From NCBI RefSeq assembly GCF_037042905.1, contig NC_087253.1, forward strand, positions 24,366,001 through 24,430,000: a stretch of DNA of 64,000 nt, in the 5' to 3' direction. The position numbers were made by a program, and so were the translations under genes. This DNA comes from Lytechinus pictus. Lineage: Eukaryota. Below the pieces are notes generated by a model. It ran no database searches. It saw nothing but the letters and a program-made list of their open reading frames with translations, and was not told the origin of the DNA. This document shows positions 7,528 through 19,088 of the stretch, piece by piece. Each line of letters starts with the position of its first letter. Positions within the stretch are counted from its first letter, which is position 1.

Positions 7528-10500
7528 ATGGCGTCCCATTACAGAGACAAGGGTCCCCTTGATTGCAAGGTCTATGTCGGTGACCTGGGGAGCTCGGCTG
7601 CAAAGCACGAGATTGAAGAGGCCTTTGGGAAGTACGGCCATATCACCAATGTCTGGATCGCCAGGAACCCGCCTGGTTTCGCTTTCGTGGAGTTTCTTGA
7701 TGACAGGGATGCAAATGACGCTGCAAAGTGCATGGATGGAAAGTAAGTTCAATGATTTACAAATGTGTGTGTTTCATATTAGGTGCGTGCACCCTATACA
7801 GCTGACATCTGTCTGTTCGGAGGAGTCTTTAAACTATTTTACTTTTTAGGTTTCCATGGAGGAGGTGTTGTGAAGCAAGACTTGGTCAGTGGAACAACCA
7901 AGGAAACAGAGACTGAAGATATCAGTCTAGTTGCGCCCCTATCTTGACATGACTCCTTCCTGATCATCTTGAGAGATTGATCTACCACGGTGTAAATGAC
8001 TGGTTTATTTTCAATTGGTCTAATGCCAAGTTATAGACCAATTACCATCTCGTCTACTATCATTTGGTCTACCATCAGTTCGTCCACTATCCACATGATC
8101 TACATGTAATTAGCATTCTCTCCACTCTCCATTTCGTCTTATAACCAGTTGGTCCAATTGGCATTTAGTCAAATACCATTTGGTCTAATTCGACTAAGTA
8201 TTAATTGGAGAAATGAATGAAAATGATATGGGCAAGAGACTAACTGATTATGAGACGAAATGGTCATTGAAAAACTGGTGATTAGACAAAGTGATGATTT
8301 ATCCAAAAGGTTATTGGACCGAATGGTGTTGTTGGATGAAGTGTTGATGGACGAAATGGAATTGAAATAAATGAAGAAAGACAATATGATGAGTGGACGA
8401 ATTGGCAATAGATGAATTGACAATTCACCCATGCACTCAACACCATGCATTTTGCATTTATCACTAATTTTCTCTTTCCATTACCAACCTCATTCAAATA
8501 AGTACATGTACTATGACACAGTTCTCATACTTCAGTTTAATAAACTGGTTTACTAGAAACCGGTTCAGGAAACCAGTTTGGAAGATCACTTTTCTAGCGT
8601 TCCCATTCAATCACCAGAAAGTGGTTTTAAAAACCACTTCATGTAAAGTGGTCTTATTGCTATGGAAACACTCTCAGCGGAGTGACATGTTTTGCGCGAA
8701 ATTTGAAACCGCAGCGTAGGCATTCCACATACAGTGTGTGGAGCGGCGCGATTAAAATGTGCGAAGAATGGTTGTGTCCTCACTTACGCTAAAACCATTT
8801 TAACGAGGCAAAGAGATCTTCAAAACTACATCGCGAGGTGGTTTTCTGAACCGGTTTGGTTGATCACTTTCAAGACCGCTTTGACCGTTCTTACTACAAG
8901 TTAAAGGAGAATGAAACCAGCTGAATCCATATCAAAGAGAAAAATCAAAGAAACATATTGTTGAAAGTTTGAGGAAGATTGAATGAATAATAAGAAAGTT
9001 ATGAGCATTTGAATATTGAGATCACTAATGCCATGTAGTTCCTCCCATTGGCAATGCGACCAAGATCAGTGATGTCACACACGTACAACTCCCTCATTAC
9101 TTTAGTACTTATTTCACTTATATTCTCACTTTTATAGAGTCTATCACAAGGTGAGGTGTTCTCTTTATGAGAGGACAAGTACAGAGGTTTCACAACATTA
9201 TATCATTGATGAATCGTTTGTCATATGATTAGAACGAGCAAAAAGAGATGTTTTGGGGTATATTTTCAGTGTCCAAAAGGGGAGAGTTGTTCATCTGTGA
9301 CATCATAGATCTTGGTCGCATTGCCAATTGGAGGATCTCCATAGCATTAGTGATCTCGACATTCAAATGCTCATAACTCCTCTATTGCTAGTCCTATTCT
9401 ACTCAAACTTTTGTTGATCTTATTCTCTGATTTTTCTGCTTTGACAAAAGCTAACTTGCTCCAAGAGTTTCATTCTCCTTTAAACTAGTTTCCAGTAAAC
9501 TTCTTTTAGGATGGTAGTGAGAATGGTGTCAATGTTCCTGGAATCTTACTAGTCTCCTTTGCAAACCCTTATAATCTGGAGTTACATTTACATGTACAGT
9601 GGTGTTTAAAAGTTAGTGAACCCCACTCAGAAAATGCACTCCTTCATGCTGTGTGTTCGAAGTAGACAACAACGCTACGTACAGTGTTTGGCGAGCCCAG
9701 AGAAACAAACTATATTGAATGTAATATTTTATCACCTGACTTCATAATTAAAGATGGCATTATTGGAACACATTTTGAATACTGTATGTTTATTTTCTGG
9801 TGGGGTTCACTAACATTTTAGCACCACTGTACATGTAAAGTGGTCTGAATGGGCAGGCTAAAATGACTTGTGCCCCAAAACATTACGTTTTATATAGCGT
9901 GTCTACTAGTGTAAAGATCAATTGTGTTATCAAATTTCAATCTTGGCATTGACTGGTCAGTTAAATATCTATTTATTATATTGTGAAGAAAAATTGTTGA
10001 CCTACATGTACAAGACAGATGAGCCTTCATGGTAACAAACACCAAGCAGGGAAAAAAATTGCACCGGGGCTCGATGAGCTATATGAACCGGAGCCCCGAA
10101 ATGCTCAAAAGACTAAGAGCCCTGGAAATTTTGTTTAAAAGGCCAGAAAATGTTGATTCTTTGCAATGTGACAACCTATCCAGTGTAGCATGTTAAGGCA
10201 CTAGGTTGCAAAAATTAGCCCCTGAAAATATATGTACATATTTTTTCCTGCATTGGCGTTGCATGTACATATACTGTATACACAAATTGTATGTTACAAT
10301 TAGTGTATGCCTCACTAAAATCTTTTATTAAAGGAAACCAAAACTTAAGAAGAGAAGCAATCTTATTGGAAAGAGTAAAATGAGAGGAACAATTTAAAAC
10401 AAGTTTCATCAAAATCGGTTATGAAATGAGCAAGTTATGGACGTTTAAAAGTCTTGTACTTTTAATGGGGATCCTCAAATTGGCAAACGTGCCTCAAAAT

Positions 10501-13500
10501 AGCTGATTTTGGGGACAACTCTCCATTTGTTTTGTACACAAATTTTCAGATTTTCCCCTTTATTTTACATATTTCACGTTATCTCCTTATCTTGACATAT
10601 AATGTGGTGTGAATTATATTTTCCCATGACATGTTGTTTTGCTCAGAAGGAGGCAAGATGCATTTGAAAGATAATGAGGTAAATCTGAAAATTTGTGTAC
10701 AAAACAAATGGAGAGCATTATTCTTTCTGATAGGATAGATTTTCTCCAAAGGTTGTATTTTGGTTTCCTTTAAGCAATGAATAGAAGTAGGGCAGATACG
10801 TGTGCTTTCATATTGGCGGATGATGGATCATACAGTTCTTGCATAATCTTATGGACAACATATTTCAAATCAAACCTGTACATGCATTTTACCTTCTCTC
10901 TCTATCAGGTATCTCTGTGGAAAGCGCGTCCGCGTCGAGATGTCCAGCGGCAGATCCAGGCGTCCCAGAGTTCGTGACCGTGAATACCCGCGGTCCAACT
11001 GGGGTGGGGGCGGTGGTGGCGGCGGCGGTGGCGGTGGAGGGGGATACCCATCCGGCCGATACGGTGGATACAGCGGCGGCGGCTGGAACAGATCGAGGTA
11101 CGATTTATCTTTGGCAAATTATTTTTAGGTCAGTTTATGAAGATCAGTATCTACTTTATCAGTTAACCCATTGACAACTTAAATCTGTGAATCACATACA
11201 CTCTACACGGTCTATCCACTGGCAGGATCGAACTGGTTAATACTTCAGCCATATTTGCCCGCATTCACAAAGGTGGTTTTGAAAACCGTCGTTTGAACCC
11301 ATGGTTTATCCAGATTTTATGTTTAAATTATGCTGAATTTACCGCGAATAAAATGTACCAATGCTGCTACACACTTTTGTCACATTGTGCTAAATGGATG
11401 CTTTTTGTTATGGTTGAGCACGCTATTTTATGCAAGTCTACTGTTGTGAATTAATGACTCAACTGTCTTGAACAGTGGACTCATAAATAAAGTAGCATGC
11501 TGAACTATGGCAACAGGCATCAATTTAGCGCATTGTGACAAAAATGCTCATCAGCATTGGACACTATTCAATCTGAAATCTGTATAAATCATGGGTTCAA
11601 GCGATTTTGCAAAGCCTCTGCCTAATTTTTAGGATTTCCTTCACTTTGGAGTTGGTGGACAAGAAATTTACCTCAAATATGAAGTATAATACTTGGCATG
11701 CAGTGTAATAAATCTATTAAGTACAGGTCTTCGCCAGGGATTGGATTTACCTACTATCCAGTGCCATACATTGATACCATTTGTCCCTCTAATTGACTTT
11801 GGTGATTCAAACTCGAGTTTTCTTTGCAAAGAAGTTGCAACATTGTTATCACCAAAGCAGCAGTAATGCTTTTAAAGAAACCACTCTCACGAGGCATTTA
11901 TTTTGTATTTTTTGTTTTATTAAATATTTTGAATGTCACCCAGATTTTTCATGTACAGGGCAGCATGTGTCGCATCCAACCATCTTCTTTTCACACGTTT
12001 ACAATTAGGCCCGTTTCGGGTACACGTGTACACGCACGGTCAAGTCAGTGCACGTGTACTAAATTCCATCACCGTGTACACGGTAGCATCTGCAAAAAGC
12101 TTGCATGGGACTGTAAAGTCAGTGAACAAGCTCACAGCCTCACATTAATTCTTAGTTCTCAGACACTGCACATGTTTTAATATGTCAATATATTTCAATT
12201 AACCTAGAATGAGTTTACTTCCGAAATCGCCGATTTAATCCACATTCATTCTGGAGACTCAAGTTTTTGTACCATGAAATGGGTCTGCTCCGGTCTCGAA
12301 AGCTCGAAAGCGTTGCTCAATCACACTCAGAGCCAATTTGAGAATCACCAATTGCGACAGCGATCATTGCTACAGTTACGTGTTATACGCTCGTACACAT
12401 GTGCTACAAGCCTACGAACAAATGCTCCTCAAATTGGCAATAAAATAATGAAAGTCAATCGATAACTTCAGTTACACTTAATTCTGCAGCGATCTGTGCA
12501 TGCACGTACGGTACAGTATGCAAAATGCGCATCCAACGAACGTCGGCGCTAGCTAGGGCCCTACATTGATTTTCTTTCGCATTCTTTATTAATTTAATGC
12601 GCTGCTAAGCCGAGTAAACTTTTTAATCGCACCAATTTTTGTGGATTGATACTTCTAACTTCTCAGGTAAGCTCTAAAACCGTGACTTAGGCTGTATAGA
12701 CCCCCTTTTATGTTACATTGACATGTTGATGCGGGTCCGTGTTGACATGTCAGAAACACTGAAAACATAACTCGCTCTCAGTGTTTACAACGTGTACCCG
12801 ACCAAAAAAAACACGCCGTGTACACGTGCATCGAAAATGGACTTACAAACGGGCCTATTAACAATCAATACCGTTTCTTTAAAAATAAAGCAGTTGGTTT
12901 CTGCAGTTTGCTTCACACTGCACATACATAACTGCATTTTCCTGCAGTTAATGTGCACAATGTCCTTTGTATAAATATGCTTTTTTTATATAAATATGTT
13001 TTATGCAGACAGTTGGTAAATATTAAACAAACTTGAATGGTGGAAACCTGACAACTTATGGGACCCGTTTCATAAAGACAAGTTTGCAACTATGGTAGCT
13101 TTGCCATTATTGTAAGTGTCATGGAAATCTTGATTCTGATTGGCTTCTGAGCCCTGTTACCAACCTTACCATAATTAATAGCAAAGTTACAACGGTTGTA
13201 ACTCTAAAATAACTTTGAAAGTTTGTGGATCTAGTTCATGAAGCTTGGACACAAGAGCAATCAAGTATAACTGAACATCCTTTGTGAGTTTTATGAACCA
13301 TGACCAAGGTCAAAGGTCATTTAAACAGGGTCAACAGACTTGGCCATTTTTTTTTTTGGGGGGGGGTTGTTGAATTGCCATCATAAATGTAAAACTTTGA
13401 AAGTTTATTGATCTAGTTATGAAACTTAGACCCAAGAGTCATCAAGTATCATTGAACATCCTGCATAAGTTTCAGGTCATATGACCGAGGTTTAAGGTCA

Positions 13501-16500
13501 TATAAGGTCAATGAACTTTGGCTACGTTGGGGGTATTTGTTGAATTGCCATCATAACATAAGTTTATAGATCTAGTTCATGAAACGTGGACAAATGGGTA
13601 ATCGACTATCACTTATCGTTTTGCATAAGTCGTACATGCTCAAGGTCATTACGGTCAATGAACATATTTTATTATCATACAGGTATGGATGGTATTTTTT
13701 GTGAATAATTATTCACTAGTTATTTTCAAAGTCAGCACTGCTGCTGTATTTAATCTTGTAATGCAGACGAGACTGCCAGAGGCATTCCACTTGTTTATCT
13801 ATCTATTTATTTAGTTGGGATGCAAATATTCTCATTTGATATCTTTCAGGAACTTATTTTGAATTTGCTTCATTATTTGCAAGAAATAACTGCAATCAAT
13901 TTTAATTTGAACTGTGAATTGCAAATGATTGGTCATAGAGAGTCAGTACTCTTTGTAAGAAGAAGCATTCTAAAAATCGCTTGCAAGTAATTTCACACTT
14001 ATGGTAGATTTGTATGTTACACCCCTTGAAGTGGGGGTTGTTTATAAATGCATCTTTCTCCAGCTCAAGAAGTTTGAATTCAACTCAAGTTTCTGAGCCA
14101 TTTTGGTCTCTGACTGACTTCATAATACCGTTTTTGCTGCCACTTATTTCAGGCTTTGTCTCCTCAACACCACCATCATCATCAACCTTCCTCATCACCA
14201 CCACTACCTCCACGACTCATCGATCACATGATCACATCTGCCCAATCAACCCTCTGGTTTTTTCTTCCTGAAGGCTATCAACACATCCAAAACAACAACA
14301 GCACCTTCTGTCTGCCATTCCCTGTTCCTGATAAAAAAAGTGAAAAGTTGGTTATAGATCTTGCCCTTCGTAGGAACAATGTTATAGATTTAGACTGGAA
14401 ATAGGGAGATAAAACAGATATCAAAGTTTCAGCCTGACTGAGACAACTAGATCTTCAAAGTTTTAATCATCCTGGCTTGAACAACCTCATCTAGCCCAGC
14501 ATCGATATGTAGTCTAGAATAAACACATCTGGCCCAATTACCTGGTTCTAAACAACTGCAGTATAGTGGGTCCAAACGCCACATCTGACCCAAATATCAG
14601 ATCCAACATCTGGCCCGGTCACCTGGTCCAAACATCTGGCCTAAATGCGTGGTTCAAACAACCACATGTGGCCCAAACACCTGGTCCAAACAACCTTATC
14701 TGGCCCAAACATCTGGTCCAAACACCTGGTCCAAACAACCTTATCTGGCCCAAACATCTGGGTCAATCACCTGGTCTAAACAACCACATCTGGGTCAATC
14801 ACCTGGCCTAAACAACCACATCTGGCCCAAACATCAGATCCAACATCTGGTCCAAACAACAGATCCAACATCTGGCCCAAACACCTGGTCCAAACAACCA
14901 CATCTGGTCCAAACATCAGATCCAACATCTGGCCCAAACACCTGGTCCAAACAACCACATCTGGCCCAAACATCAGATCCAACATCTGGCCCAAACACCT
15001 GGTCCAAACAACCACATCTGGTCCAATCACCTGGTCCAATCAACCACATCTGGTCCAAACATCAGATCCAACATCTGGCCCAAACACCAGGTCTAAACAA
15101 CCACATCTGGCCCAAACAACTTCTTCTGGCTTTAACATCCAGCCTAAACAACTGGCCTGACTCTTCTCCATCCTTCACAACCATCCAACTTCCAGTCTTC
15201 CAAATCAAAGGTTCCTGGCTGTTTTATTGCCAACTTTATTTTGTTTATTTATTCTTCTATGTCGAGGGAGAAGAAGTGGAGGAGTTGAGATTCTCCCAAT
15301 TCATATTGGAATTGAATCAAATTTACACACTGCCAAGCTACATTGCATTGGATTCATGAATTTACAGCAACCTGTGTTCGGTCAATTTGTAAATTGCTAT
15401 AATGCCTGATTAGGAAGTGAAAGACAGCTTTGACATTATATGAAGCAATTGCATTTGATACCTTACTTAACCTGCTGTAAAAGAAAATCACTGCTTCCGA
15501 AATATCAGTGAAGACACATTTGCAGATTTTTCATTTTAATAGTGACTTGCGCTGCCATTTTGGAAATAATTTGTGACTTTTGAAAATTGCTAAATTGAAC
15601 AGTCAATTCCGGGATGCTGTGAATTCAGAATCAATCTATGGTACAGCATTTGAGAGCACTTGGAAAAGCATAATTACTTGGATTATTTTGATGTGTGACC
15701 ACAATACAAGGTCTTCAGTTTGACGTCCCAATTAATATAATTATATGATCACTGATTGTGCAAAGAAGTGTTAACAGAAAAATGAACGTATATTTCATCA
15801 TATTTATTCTTTGAATGCCCATTGGATGCAAGACGAAATAAAATCAAATAATTAATGGGAACCTATGCTTTATTCTCCCTCTACGATTTGATTTTGTTGG
15901 AGTTCCCACTTTTAAAATGAAGATAACAAAACATTCACAATGGTGACAAATTTCTTTAGTTATTCGGGCAGACAAATTTGTTGTGAATTTCTAGGTTTTG
16001 AAATGAGTTGGTGAGGGAATCAGTTAAATGTAGGAATATATTTTGGTGATATCCATCCAGCTTTTTAATTATTTTATGTTATTTTCTTGCAGATACAGCC
16101 GGAGCAAGAGTCGAAGCAGGTGAGATAAGCTCTGATTCTTGACTGTAAAAACTTTATAAAAACGTTTCTGGTACGGTGCTAAAAATGATTTTGTTTATGT
16201 AAGGGGTTCTTACGCTAAACATTTTACTTCAAAACTTTTAAGTGCCTGTTACTGTAGTTGCAGCAAACAATCATTTTATGAGGAAGTCTTTAAAATCAAG
16301 GCTAATCGTCACTGTATTATGGTAGATCTAGATCAGGGAGGTGTTTCACAAAGATTTAGTATGACTTAGAGTCAGACTTAAATGGTGAGTGGCGTGCGGT
16401 ATAAAAGGCATGACCGCATTGGTTAGATCATGTGAATGATGATGCGCACGAGAGATTGCGCATTGCATATCACATATGCTTCAACATTTACATGTAAGTG

Positions 16501-19088
16501 CAACTCTAAGTCATGCTTCAATCTTTGTGAAAAACCCCCCTGATTTGTTTACCCAAACCTAACTCTGTGAAATCGTGAAATCCACACTGACGGTTACCAA
16601 CACAGATAGGTACATGTGGGACAGTCATGATTATAATTGCTTGAAAAACACCTCAATATCTGGCTGGTATGCTTTTCTTATTTTGTCCTTTTTTCAGCAA
16701 TAACACATTTTCTACCAGAATGATATAATAATGATAATAGCCAATTTTTATATAGCACTTTTCCCAGAATGGCTCAAAGCGCTTTACAGTATATTATTAC
16801 CCCGGTCATTGGATTCATTTCAATCCCACACGAAAAGTGCACAATTTCCACTCCCTAGGAAGCATTCATCGCAGCCTCATTATGGCGCTGGCAAATTCAA
16901 ACAATATCTTTCGCATCCTACCGGGTACCGGATATGATACATATTTTTGTATACACTGCATATATAAACACTTGGGTGGTAATTTTATTGGATTCTGTTT
17001 GAACTCATTTCTAAATTTTTATCACACGCAACTGGCATTCATGTTAAAGACATACATGTAAGACATGGAAATTGGTTGTTTGTTTATTTTCTGCTTTTTG
17101 TGTGTCTGGCTCGCCCAGAACAAAAAAAAAACTCTGGGAAGCTTTGAAATTATCTTTGCGTGAACTAAAGAAAATATATGAAAAAATGAAAAATAACAAT
17201 TTAGTAAAGCAGCTTTCATTTGAAAGTGGGAACTCAACAAGTCATAATATTAGATCTATAGAAGTATTGGTATGTTTTGCTATTTTGTAATCCATCTGAC
17301 TGTAAAAAAAATAATCTGAAGTTATGTTCTGAATTCAATTTGAATATTCAACTATGAATTGCATATCTCATTTCATGTTATCAACACTTGTATATTTCTG
17401 TATCCATTTTCTATTTATTCAAAGTTTGTAATCGGTGTGTAAAAAGTGTATATGTTTGCATTAACATGTAAATAAAATAAATATCCACCATGGACAAAAA
17501 AATATTGAATTGAATTAAAATTTGTAATACTGAATAATATATTTTTTTTAATGTATCAATTACAATGTTCTTATATGCTTCAATTTCTAGATCTCCTAGG
17601 CGCTACCGATCTCGCAGCAGATCACCACGCCGTCGATCGCCAAGTAGATCACCACGCCGTCGATCGCCAAGCAAATCTCCACGCCGTCGATCACCTGTCT
17701 TTAAAAGGTAATAGCTCTCTCTATTGCACGGGAACTGTTCATATTTCTCTTTATGTAGGAAGGTAATGTTTCTTTTGAATGTGTGTTGAGCGTGAACATA
17801 ATTATACAGGACTCTTTTACAGCTTACATGATGTGGGCCATTTACTTATCTTTAGAGGTGACTGATTTTTTGCCTTAAAATGTTTTTGCTGGGATCTCAA
17901 AAACTGTGTCTCTTCAAGTAGCCAATGAAACAAATTTACTAGTAATTCAAGTGTAACACGCGGAAACTGATGTAGAAAGATGACACACGACACCATTCCT
18001 TGTGTTTCGGTTCGTTTAATATCGATGGATCGTTACATACAAAATTCCAAGTACAAGAACAAAAGATAGAAAAAAACCCTGGCAATCTGGCCTAGAGGAC
18101 CTTATTTCCTCTGGTGAGAGCCTCACCCGCTACACGAATGTCATGTCAAATACCTATAATTCTGACCCGAAAATGAAGAAGCCTCTCTGCCTGCCCCATG
18201 AATGGGGTGCAGTGCAGGAGTGAATTGGAGTAAAATCCTCTCTCCCTTTTATGCAGTTATCACTCTCTATTCACAGATGCTTAGCCTTGACCATAATTAT
18301 CTACGTCATACAAGCTCATAGCTCTGGAATGTGATGTTTTGACCCAAAGACCATTCAGCATCACTCTTACCCAGAAAGAGTGTGAATCATACTTCTTAAA
18401 AAGCATGAAGAATGTTAAACATTTCTACTTTCTACTACTTCCTGTGCACTTCCTGTGAAGGCATCTATTACTTACAGACAAATAATTAAGAGTAATGAAA
18501 ATATATGAATTTTCCTTAAACAGTTCACTTTGACCTGTTACACAAGTTTCATTTTTTTTGCCTGAAGTGATTAGGTAAAATATACATAAAATAGAAAATG
18601 TACATGTATAACAATGGACATCTAATTAATTATTGGAAATGAGGAAGGTATTGGCTGAAAAGGAAGAAACCTTGTATAAGGTCAAACTACTCATCATTTT
18701 ATTGTAATATTATTTTATTCTGCCAGTTATGAAAGAGATATATGTTCCTCAGTACCTCAATTGACCTGTTTTTTCATGGTTTCAACTTTTTTCTGTAACC
18801 AGGAGCAGATCCCATTCTCGTGACCGATCGCGTGGAAAATCCCGGGAGGGTTCCCGATCTCACGAACGCTCCAAGGGGCGGTCCCGATCCCACGACCGCT
18901 CCAGAGGGCGGTCCAGATCCCGCGACCGCTCCAAGGGCCGCTACCGATCTCGGTCCAAGAGCCCCCGCTACGAGAAGTCCCGCTCCCGAACCCGTTCGCG
19001 TTCCCGCACTCCCGAAGATAACAAGGATCATCATTCCTTCAACGAGGATAACTCTCCCAGTCACCAGCAAGAAAACGACGGGGACTAA
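7528..19088 (+). CDS. SRSF3: Serine/arginine-rich splicing factor, SRSF3/SRp20-like (RRM + Gly linker + RS domain, no zinc knuckle), 277 aa
   Basis: Coding exons 7528-7742, 10909-11097, 16093-16119, 17591-17707, 18803-19088; all GT-AG, all phase 2, 834 nt in total. RRM: CKVYVGDLG...[21 protein letters not shown]...[20 protein letters not shown] repeats follow. The SRSF7-type CCHC knuckle is absent. Confidence 0.92.
8002..8429. mobile_element. MITE-like interspersed repeat (second copy at 63543-63940)
   Basis: Both copies begin gtttattttcaattggtctaatgccaa and end gaattg(a/g)caatt(c/t)acc, with loosely inverted halves. Confidence 0.7.
8905..9479. mobile_element. Kolobok/T2-type MITE nested in an older TIR element (about 8522-9522)
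   Basis: TTAA|AGGAGAATGAAAC...GTTTCATTCTCCT|TTAA. The flanks ttctca...gtttactagaaac and gtttccagtaaac...tgagaa are inverted matches. A partial copy lies near 61950-62150. Confidence 0.8.
9597..9829. mobile_element. Tc1/mariner-type MITE
   Basis: TA|CAGTGGTG..AAAAGTTAGTGAACCCC ... GGGGTTCACTAAC..CACCACTG|TA. Confidence 0.8.
10332..10769. mobile_element. Kolobok/T2-type MITE
   Basis: TTAA|AGGAAACCAAAA ... TTTTGGTTTCCT|TTAA. Confidence 0.8.
12007..12856. mobile_element. Non-autonomous TIR DNA transposon
   Basis: taggcccgttt...aaacgggccta termini, with subterminal gtacacgtg repeats at both ends. Confidence 0.6.
13205..13795 (+). mobile_element. Helentron/HINE-like non-autonomous element with internal ~150-190 bp tandem units
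   Basis: Three units of gatctagtt(c)atgaa.c.t.gac....ag...aaggtcat...ggtcaa, ending in a short GC-rich segment plus cttgtt. Class assignment is an inference from structure. Confidence 0.55.
14153..14231 (+). other. Candidate poison/alternative exon start in the SR gene (PTC at 14229-14231)
   Basis: Branch-like CTGACTGAC at 14110-14118 and ttatttcAG at 14152. In frame after exon 10909-11097 it reads [26 protein letters not shown]. Very C/A-rich. Confidence 0.5.
14524..15156 (+). repeat. Intronic minisatellite (57-bp higher-order unit built from catctggcccaaa/cacctggtccaaa subunits)
   Basis: Unit tctggcccaaacacctggtccaaacaaccacatctggtccaaacatcagatccaaca repeats directly. Confidence 0.9.
16725..16980 (-). 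mobile_element. SINE 3' fragment
   Basis: The minus strand ends ...gtaaagcgctttgag...aagtgctatataaa...(tta)n, an L2-partner-type SINE tail. Confidence 0.5.

Follow-up and report, generated by a model that had tools for sequence, protein, structure and literature searches.

A locus-specific minisatellite in the candidate poison-exon region of an SRSF3-type gene of the sea urchin Lytechinus pictus

SR (serine/arginine-rich) proteins keep their own levels steady by way of poison exons, and little is understood of the evolution of the binding sites that such exons contain. A locus of the sea urchin Lytechinus pictus gives this problem a concrete form. A stretch of 64,000 nucleotides (nt), positions 24,366,001 to 24,430,000 of the forward strand of contig NC_087253.1 (NCBI RefSeq assembly GCF_037042905.1) and here called the window, contains an SR protein gene, apparently of the SRSF3 type, whose second intron carries a tandem array of short A/C-rich units close to a candidate poison exon. 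Has selection multiplied a cluster of binding sites here, for the gene's own protein or for another, or has a minisatellite grown in an interesting place without consequence? The reading that we favour, and to which we give an even chance of being right, is that the array is a slippage-born expansion of an already existing A/C-rich enhancer or sensor domain, that it has been tolerated, and that it amounts at most to a redundant extension of that domain. The evidence comes from the anatomy of the array, its distribution in the genome, the orthologous introns of other deuterostomes and the motif content of the repeat; all positions are those of the window, and the features are collected in Table 1.

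A tandem array inside an SR protein gene

A hand segmentation at the CTGG anchor divides positions 14529-15151 into 41 contiguous units, of which 21 are 13 nt long (CTGGYCCAAACAY), 12 are 19 nt long (CTGGYCCAAACAY plus AACCAC), six are 12 nt long (CAGATCCAACAT) and two are longer, decayed units of 24 and 26 nt. Tandem Repeats Finder calls the array from 14569 to 15121, with nested periods of 13, 25, 32, 57, 77 and 89 nt, and the tandem repetition lies far beyond chance. The copies stand head to tail along a gradient of divergence, from decayed edges to a young and homogeneous core, which is the structure of a minisatellite. The minisatellite of about 600 bp that a first-pass annotation of this DNA had reported on the sense strand is thus recovered as a sense-strand array of 41 units, and its start, which the annotation had placed some 300 nt past the candidate premature termination codon, lies 293 nt after an in-frame TGA at 14229-14231. 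The base composition is A32 C35 G14 T19, so that A and C together make up 67%. The array has no coding potential, its stop-free frames being a by-product of the low content of T and G; a coding reading was rejected, the single match, to DUF7608, falling below threshold. In the predicted RNA, units such as CAGAUCCAACAUCUG form many hairpins of 5-7 bp, and the minimum free energy of the array RNA is -149 kcal/mol as against -129 +/- 4 for shuffles (z -4.7). One AATAAA hexamer adjoins the first unit (14518-14523), and may have arisen by chance or may signal intronic polyadenylation.

The array is confined to this locus. When a 32-nt consensus was scanned through the 812-Mb genome with up to three mismatches, all seven matches fell within the array and none lay on the reverse strand, and a degenerate 24-mer representing two basic units found nothing outside this array but an unrelated word with three mismatches. 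On either side of the array (13800-14523 and 15157-16200) the sequence is single copy in the same genome. These scans, together with a BLAST search of the whole array and the flank searches, all in the urchin's own genome, rule out a dispersed satellite or transposon as its origin. The first-pass annotation had named dispersal of the unit over unrelated loci, in either orientation, as one of the observations that together would speak against its proposal; the unit proves instead to be unique to the locus and to the forward strand, and this objection falls away. The dispersed element upstream of the array is a separate matter: it has at least 3,941 candidates genome-wide, and 40 copies were scored, with identities of 76-82% and matches confined to the first ~300 nt of the query. 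Local tandem arrays as such are frequent in this genome, with 16 arrays of at least 200 bp in 263 kb of sampled sequence, or about one per 16 kb.

The gene model was assembled by searching the exons one by one against references. Exon 1 matches the RNA recognition motif (RRM) family of Pfam (RRM_1, E 4e-15) and is 71% identical to its best outside relatives in a word search, the search among representatives giving at most about 76%. The best solved structures for this RRM are those of the SRSF3 RRM (2I38/2I2Y, E 1e-25), followed by that of SRSF7 (2HVZ, E 7.5e-21). Exon 2 aligns with an orthologous protein of the sea urchin Diadema setosum (P0265) and with a hemichordate protein and, as read from its sequence, contains no CCHC zinc knuckle; the arginine/serine-rich (RS) exons, read likewise, contain no hydrophobic stretch like the one of 27 residues in SRSF7. 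Judging by the RRM match, the RS exons and the relatives, which are named SRSF3/7-like, the host gene is an SR protein gene of the SRSF3 type. Rfam gave no match between 7000 and 20000. A Logan contig (L060) whose RRM is 71% identical represents the compact gene of a distant animal and is not informative.

Eight other genes with an SRSF3/7-like RRM are present in the same genome, arranged as two tandem clusters (three at C3:2.327-2.390 Mb and four at C3:12.788-12.851 Mb) and one further copy (C7:6.068 Mb) with an open frame of 232 amino acids and a Gly/Arg-rich tail. Each of the eight has diverged further than the gene in the window, and none carries the array, the conserved poison-exon core described below or a long A/C-rich domain. 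One of these paralogues (P4) has an array of its own kind downstream of its RRM exon, a 300-nt (TCT)n or CT-rich, G-free tract at 10612-10908, in sense orientation, of C3:2308000-2327999 (reverse complement).

The A/C-rich region around the array

The orthologue comparison covered Diadema setosum, starfish (Patiria miniata and Acanthaster), amphioxus and the SRSF3 locus of a shark. The Diadema orthologue was found by a profile search and its intron-bearing gene lies on L061. With blastn between the two urchin genes, the sole match outside the exons connects 14171-14257 of the window to 22901-22981 of L061 (78% identity over 87 nt, E 1.8e-12). The Diadema alignment takes in a polypyrimidine tract, an AG acceptor and the block CGATCACATGATC with its in-frame TGA (L061 22880-22985); with the acceptor at 14152/14153, the frame of exon 2 runs into the TGA at 14229-14231, as is also the case in Diadema. 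The candidate poison exon is supported by this conservation, which includes its stop codon. A metagenome scan with the conserved core gave 0 matches.

In both urchins the core opens a longer domain that is rich in A and C and poor in G, 507 nt in Diadema (L061 22880-23386; A28 C39 G13 T20). Domains of the same kind occupy the same intron in Patiria miniata (416 nt, 5788-6203 of L062) and in amphioxus (about 700 nt, on L064); at the shark SRSF3 locus no sequence similarity to the echinoderm domain was detectable. The array takes up 633 nt in the 3' half of the corresponding 1,060-nt region of Lytechinus pictus, and once the array is subtracted, the region matches its relatives' domains in length and composition. 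The composition and motif densities of the array, in turn, equal those of the non-repeated rest of the domain. All four domains end at G/GTT (AAG/GTTCCT at 15213 in the window, AAG/GTTGCT in Diadema, GTG/GTTAGT in Patiria and TAG/GTTATC in amphioxus), these right boundaries having been picked by eye and the similarity of the two urchins there being marginal (P about 0.07). An NCBI-annotated isoform of Acanthaster (P0008) runs through the homologue of the Patiria domain and stops exactly at the Patiria donor GTG/GTTAGT, which makes the domain a cassette exon in the starfish.

Patches alignable with Diadema reach the start of the array, and beyond it the A/C-rich domain and the GGTT boundary resume, collinear with Diadema. 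At the equivalent site, no large array is present in Diadema, Patiria or amphioxus: in Diadema a 32-nt A/C-rich repeat reaches no more than 2.3 copies, Patiria has some 30 nt of (CAAC)n, and the amphioxus domain contains no tandem array at all. Since the large array is missing from these relatives, its expansion is lineage-specific, and it seems to have grown inside a conserved domain that was there before it. The first-pass annotation had proposed a comparison of orthologous introns; as an array the feature is absent from those of Diadema, starfish and amphioxus, and on this point the comparison went against it. Its suggestion of an origin by satellite expansion fared better, and takes the form of a local expansion within a region whose A/C-rich character recurs in four deuterostome lineages. 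In Patiria the orthologous intron holds three minisatellites unrelated to this array (L062 4465-5136, 7661-8000 and 8359-8958), one of which, a 20-nt unit repeated 34 times, begins right after the exon 2 donor.

Whether the array would be exonic depends on which donor is used. If, as the starfish homology suggests, it is the weak candidate donor at 15213, the array would be part of a poison exon of 1,060 nt and lie downstream of its stop codon; with the donor at 14339 it would begin about 185 nt into the downstream intron. A single long cassette exon spanning the whole region, with the array exonic, and a short exon ending near 14338 stand at about even odds. The first-pass annotation's placement of the array inside an intron therefore holds in the sense that it lies within intron 2, while the homology to the starfish cassette exon means that it may belong to an alternative exon of that intron.

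Two further observations concern the same region. The word CCAATCA, often as RCCAATCAGC with the CCAAT/Y-box core, forms a cluster on the sense strand of the A/C-rich domain in each of the four species but is scarce elsewhere in these genes (14242, 15023 and 15036 in the window; 22966, 23234 and 23266 in L061; 5810 and 5851 in L062; 7718, 7760 and 7835 in L064). The expected number is 0.06-0.15 per domain, for a word that was noticed post hoc, and the array itself mostly carries the variant CCAAACA instead. Some 55 nt past the end of the A/C-rich region lies a purine-rich stretch, GAGGGAGAAGAAGTGGAGGAGTTGAG (15266-15292), which resembles a GAR-type enhancer.

Table 1. Host gene and array region in the window (a slash marks a splice position)
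Feature	Position	Strand	Remarks
Exon 1, coding part	7528-7742	+	Contains the start codon and the greater part of the RRM; donor AAA/GTAAGT; stop-free frame
Exon 2	10909-11097	+	End of the RRM, Arg-rich linker, Gly run; donor GAG/GTACGA
Intron 2	11098-17590	+	6,493 nt; separates the RRM/linker exon from the first RS exon; contains the alternative region and the array
Dispersed interspersed repeat, SINE- or MITE-like (short interspersed or miniature inverted-repeat element)	13500-13800		About 300 bp; multi-copy; outside the array
Candidate poison exon, conserved core	14153-14260	+	After acceptor ttatttcag/G; in-frame TGA 14229-14231 within the best-conserved stretch CGATCACATGATC
A/C-rich, G-poor alternative region	14153-15212	+	1,060 nt; A32 C32 G14 T22; may form one long poison cassette exon
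Alternative candidate donor	14339-14344	+	AAA/GTGAAA; would give a 186-nt poison exon; putative, read from the sequence
Tandem array	14524-15156	+	633 nt; 41 contiguous units, 12, 13 or 19 nt long; consensus CTGGYCCAAACAY (+AACCAC)
Youngest part of the array	14843-15026	+	57-nt higher-order repeat, 3.2 copies, 97% identical (Tandem Repeats Finder)
Candidate weak donor	15213-15218	+	AAG/GTTCCT at the end of the A/C-rich region
Exon 3	17591-17707	+	First RS exon
Last coding exon	18803-19088	+	RS-rich tail, TAA stop; aligns with the last exon of Diadema

Motif content and the competing readings

SRSF3 recognises CNYC and SRSF7 recognises GAY, and inactivation of the zinc knuckle shifts SRSF7 to CNYC (PMC7948361). 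A CNYC-type preference of the host protein is plausible, since it is of the SRSF3 type and has no zinc knuckle. Compared with dinucleotide-preserving shuffles, the array is not enriched in CNYC (36 occurrences against 44 +/- 5), whereas WCWWC (39 against 16 +/- 4) and ACATC (23 against 3) are in excess, an excess that arises because one pentamer sits in a repeated unit. The information content of the unit peaks at CTGG (1.35-1.69 bits), and its least conserved position is the middle base of ACAYC (0.25 bits), so that the proposed motif is not the conserved part. The count against shuffles that the first-pass annotation had suggested shows an excess of WCWWC and ACATC, through that one pentamer, but none of CNYC, and the conserved bases are CTGG; its remark that almost every subunit has ACAUC, ACACC or CAAC is roughly right, the DNA forms ACATC, ACACC or CAAC occurring in 34 of the 41 units. 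Candidate sites follow one another at a density of about one per 16 nt. Three of the 16 sampled arrays reach at least four WCWWC per 100 nt on one strand. Another array of the window, 1.7 kb of (GATGGATGGGTG)n at 43434-45114 with a (CAUCCAUCCACC)-like minus strand, has 18.8 CNYC per 100 nt on that strand, three times the density of the array at 14524-15156, and no SR gene is linked to it. Any repeat that is C-rich will be decorated with short degenerate SR motifs, and the motifs of the array are compatible with SRSF3-type binding but do not single it out.

In the reading that we favour, this locus-specific minisatellite would be young, having grown through slippage in replication or through unequal exchange from the 3' half of a conserved A/C-rich and G-poor poison region of much greater age. 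Because it keeps the composition of the parent domain and its CAUC, CACC and CAAC words, it would add about 35-40 further sites, multiplying sites of the same type about 2.5-fold, for a C-preferring RNA-binding protein, the leading candidate for which is the gene's own product. The likeliest effect would be a redundant lengthening of the splicing-enhancer or sensor domain through which the stop-bearing exon is included at high levels of the protein. The expansion need not be adaptive, and was probably tolerated because the kind of sequence present remained unchanged.

Several points weigh against this account. The A/C-rich content that the array has kept is just as compatible with extra copies that are in use and adaptive. 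The similarity of the array unit to the 32-nt proto-repeat of Diadema is not significant against shuffles (z 1.3), which leaves the descent of the unit from a conserved motif only suggestive. The stretch from 14330 to 14420 is not C-rich, is without a good counterpart in Diadema and contains possible donors, so that the array may be intronic, and 1,060 nt would be an unusual length for an internal exon. The splice junctions, the inclusion of the exon and nonsense-mediated decay of its transcripts are, for Lytechinus pictus, predictions from the sequence.

The most direct competitor, which corresponds to the copy-number-tunable enhancer of the first-pass annotation, holds that the array is an adaptive multivalent sensor, some 40 closely spaced C-rich sites having been selected since they make inclusion of the poison exon more sensitive, or more cooperative, with respect to the gene's own protein and so set the autoregulatory set-point. 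Its location suits this role, in, or less than 200 nt from, an alternative exon that bears a stop and is conserved, in a gene of the SRSF3 type, as do the retention of ACAUC, ACACC or CAAC in 34 of the 41 units and a host protein free of the zinc knuckle that moves SRSF7 off CNYC. The A/C-rich content of the domain has moreover been kept over four deuterostome lineages while its exact sequence turned over, as would be expected of a cluster of binding sites. Yet CNYC does not exceed the composition-matched expectation, the best-conserved positions of the unit are CTGG, three orthologues do without the array, the high base rate of minisatellites accounts for it without selection, and the binding protein is a candidate only; we consider the adaptive sensor unlikely. 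A broader version, in which a site cluster with variable copy number was amplified under selection and the protein or a Y-box partner acts cooperatively on exon inclusion or nuclear retention, seems to us quite unlikely. If it were true, slippage would provide a fast evolutionary dial for the autoregulatory set-point.

It may also be that other proteins read the domain. YB-1 binds CAUC and CACC with high affinity and stimulates exon inclusion (PMC3458536), and these are the words found in the units of the array. With 67% A+C and a sense-strand CCAATCA cluster, the Y-box/CCAAT core, in the domain of all four species, the array could belong to an enhancer read by a Y-box protein, and the result would be cross-regulation rather than autoregulation. 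Proteins such as hnRNP L and the poly(C)-binding proteins, which read CA-rich and C-rich RNA respectively, could serve as such readers as well. The motif evidence for any of them is, however, as unspecific as it is for SRSF3, CCAATCA was seen post hoc and most units of the array have CCAAACA, and we regard such a platform as improbable. Of similarly low probability, though ranked just above it, is that the array is an inert intronic passenger: the poison exon would end near 14338, and the array would be an ordinary intronic minisatellite whose likeness to SR motifs follows from base composition. The possible donors at 14339 and 14369 and the non-C-rich stretch between 14330 and 14420 are in keeping with this, as are the threefold CNYC density on the minus strand of 43434-45114, the WCWWC-rich minority among the sampled arrays and the three unrelated arrays in the starfish intron. 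What speaks against a passenger is that patches of Diadema similarity align up to the array start and are followed, in collinear order, by the A/C-rich domain and the GGTT boundary, and that an annotated starfish isoform has the homologue of the complete domain within an exon.

The first-pass annotation had also raised the idea of a sponge or architectural RNA, by analogy with mouse SRSF7: incompletely spliced transcripts bearing the array would be retained in the nucleus, where they would tie up the SR protein in bodies. Apart from the high density of candidate sites, what speaks for it is the analogy with SRSF7 autoregulation, as far as Konigs et al. 2020 is reported in PMC7948361. The formation of SRSF7 bodies, though, needs the hydrophobic stretch of 27 residues in the RS domain, of which none is visible in the RS exons of the host gene; the many small hairpins of the array (z -4.7) would hide part of the sites, and the orthologues have no such array. 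The sponge is the least supported of the rival readings, and we think it very improbable.

Relation to known regulatory exons and to minisatellites

Exon 4 of vertebrate SRSF3 (SRp20) is an autoregulatory poison cassette exon (PMC10321290). The urchin region resembles it in gene family, in its position between the RRM/linker and RS exons and in its early in-frame stop, and also in a strongly conserved core, a C-rich content of the type preferred by the protein and a length of several hundred nt in the relatives of the urchin gene (about 400-700 nt). It differs in carrying a 633-nt tandem expansion that is absent in the relatives examined and in having no detectable similarity to the shark SRSF3 locus, and its inclusion and its coupling to nonsense-mediated decay are again predicted from sequence.

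For the sister gene SRSF7, autoregulation involves retained introns, Split-ORFs (open reading frames that are split) and nuclear bodies, according to the account of Konigs et al. 2020 given in PMC7948361, and body formation depends on the 27-residue hydrophobic stretch in the RS domain (PMC7948361). The likeness lies in unproductive transcripts with many sites for the gene's own protein around a poison exon, sites that are putative in the urchin. Unlike the urchin protein, SRSF7 has a GAY-binding zinc knuckle as well as the oligomerisation stretch of 27 hydrophobic residues, and its sites are dispersed, whereas those of the urchin form a true tandem array. With the A/C-rich exonic enhancers of YB-1 the array shares an A+C content of 67%, the repeated CAUC, CACC and CAAC and a probable position in or beside a weak alternative exon; the known enhancers of this type are short single elements, whereas here there is an array of some 40 units whose exonic location and binding are putative.

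What the locus appears to record is an old deuterostome poison-exon region that has kept its A/C-rich content while its sequence turned over, and that slippage would then have multiplied 2.5-fold in one urchin lineage. If the protein reads the extra copies, the locus is a natural experiment in binding-site valency, directly testable in a classic embryo system; if it does not, it is a clean case of a functional low-complexity region seeding a neutral minisatellite. To our knowledge, tandem amplification of a site cluster has been described for no SR gene, and none was found in the literature that we searched.

Ordinary intronic minisatellites, with units of 10-100 nt, are the remaining point of comparison. 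The urchin array is like them in its nested periods, its decayed edges and young core, its restriction to one locus and its noncoding nature, and unlike them in having been seeded in what appears to be a deeply conserved regulatory region and in keeping a strand-specific composition. It would be something new if its copies are used, and is otherwise an ordinary minisatellite in an interesting place.

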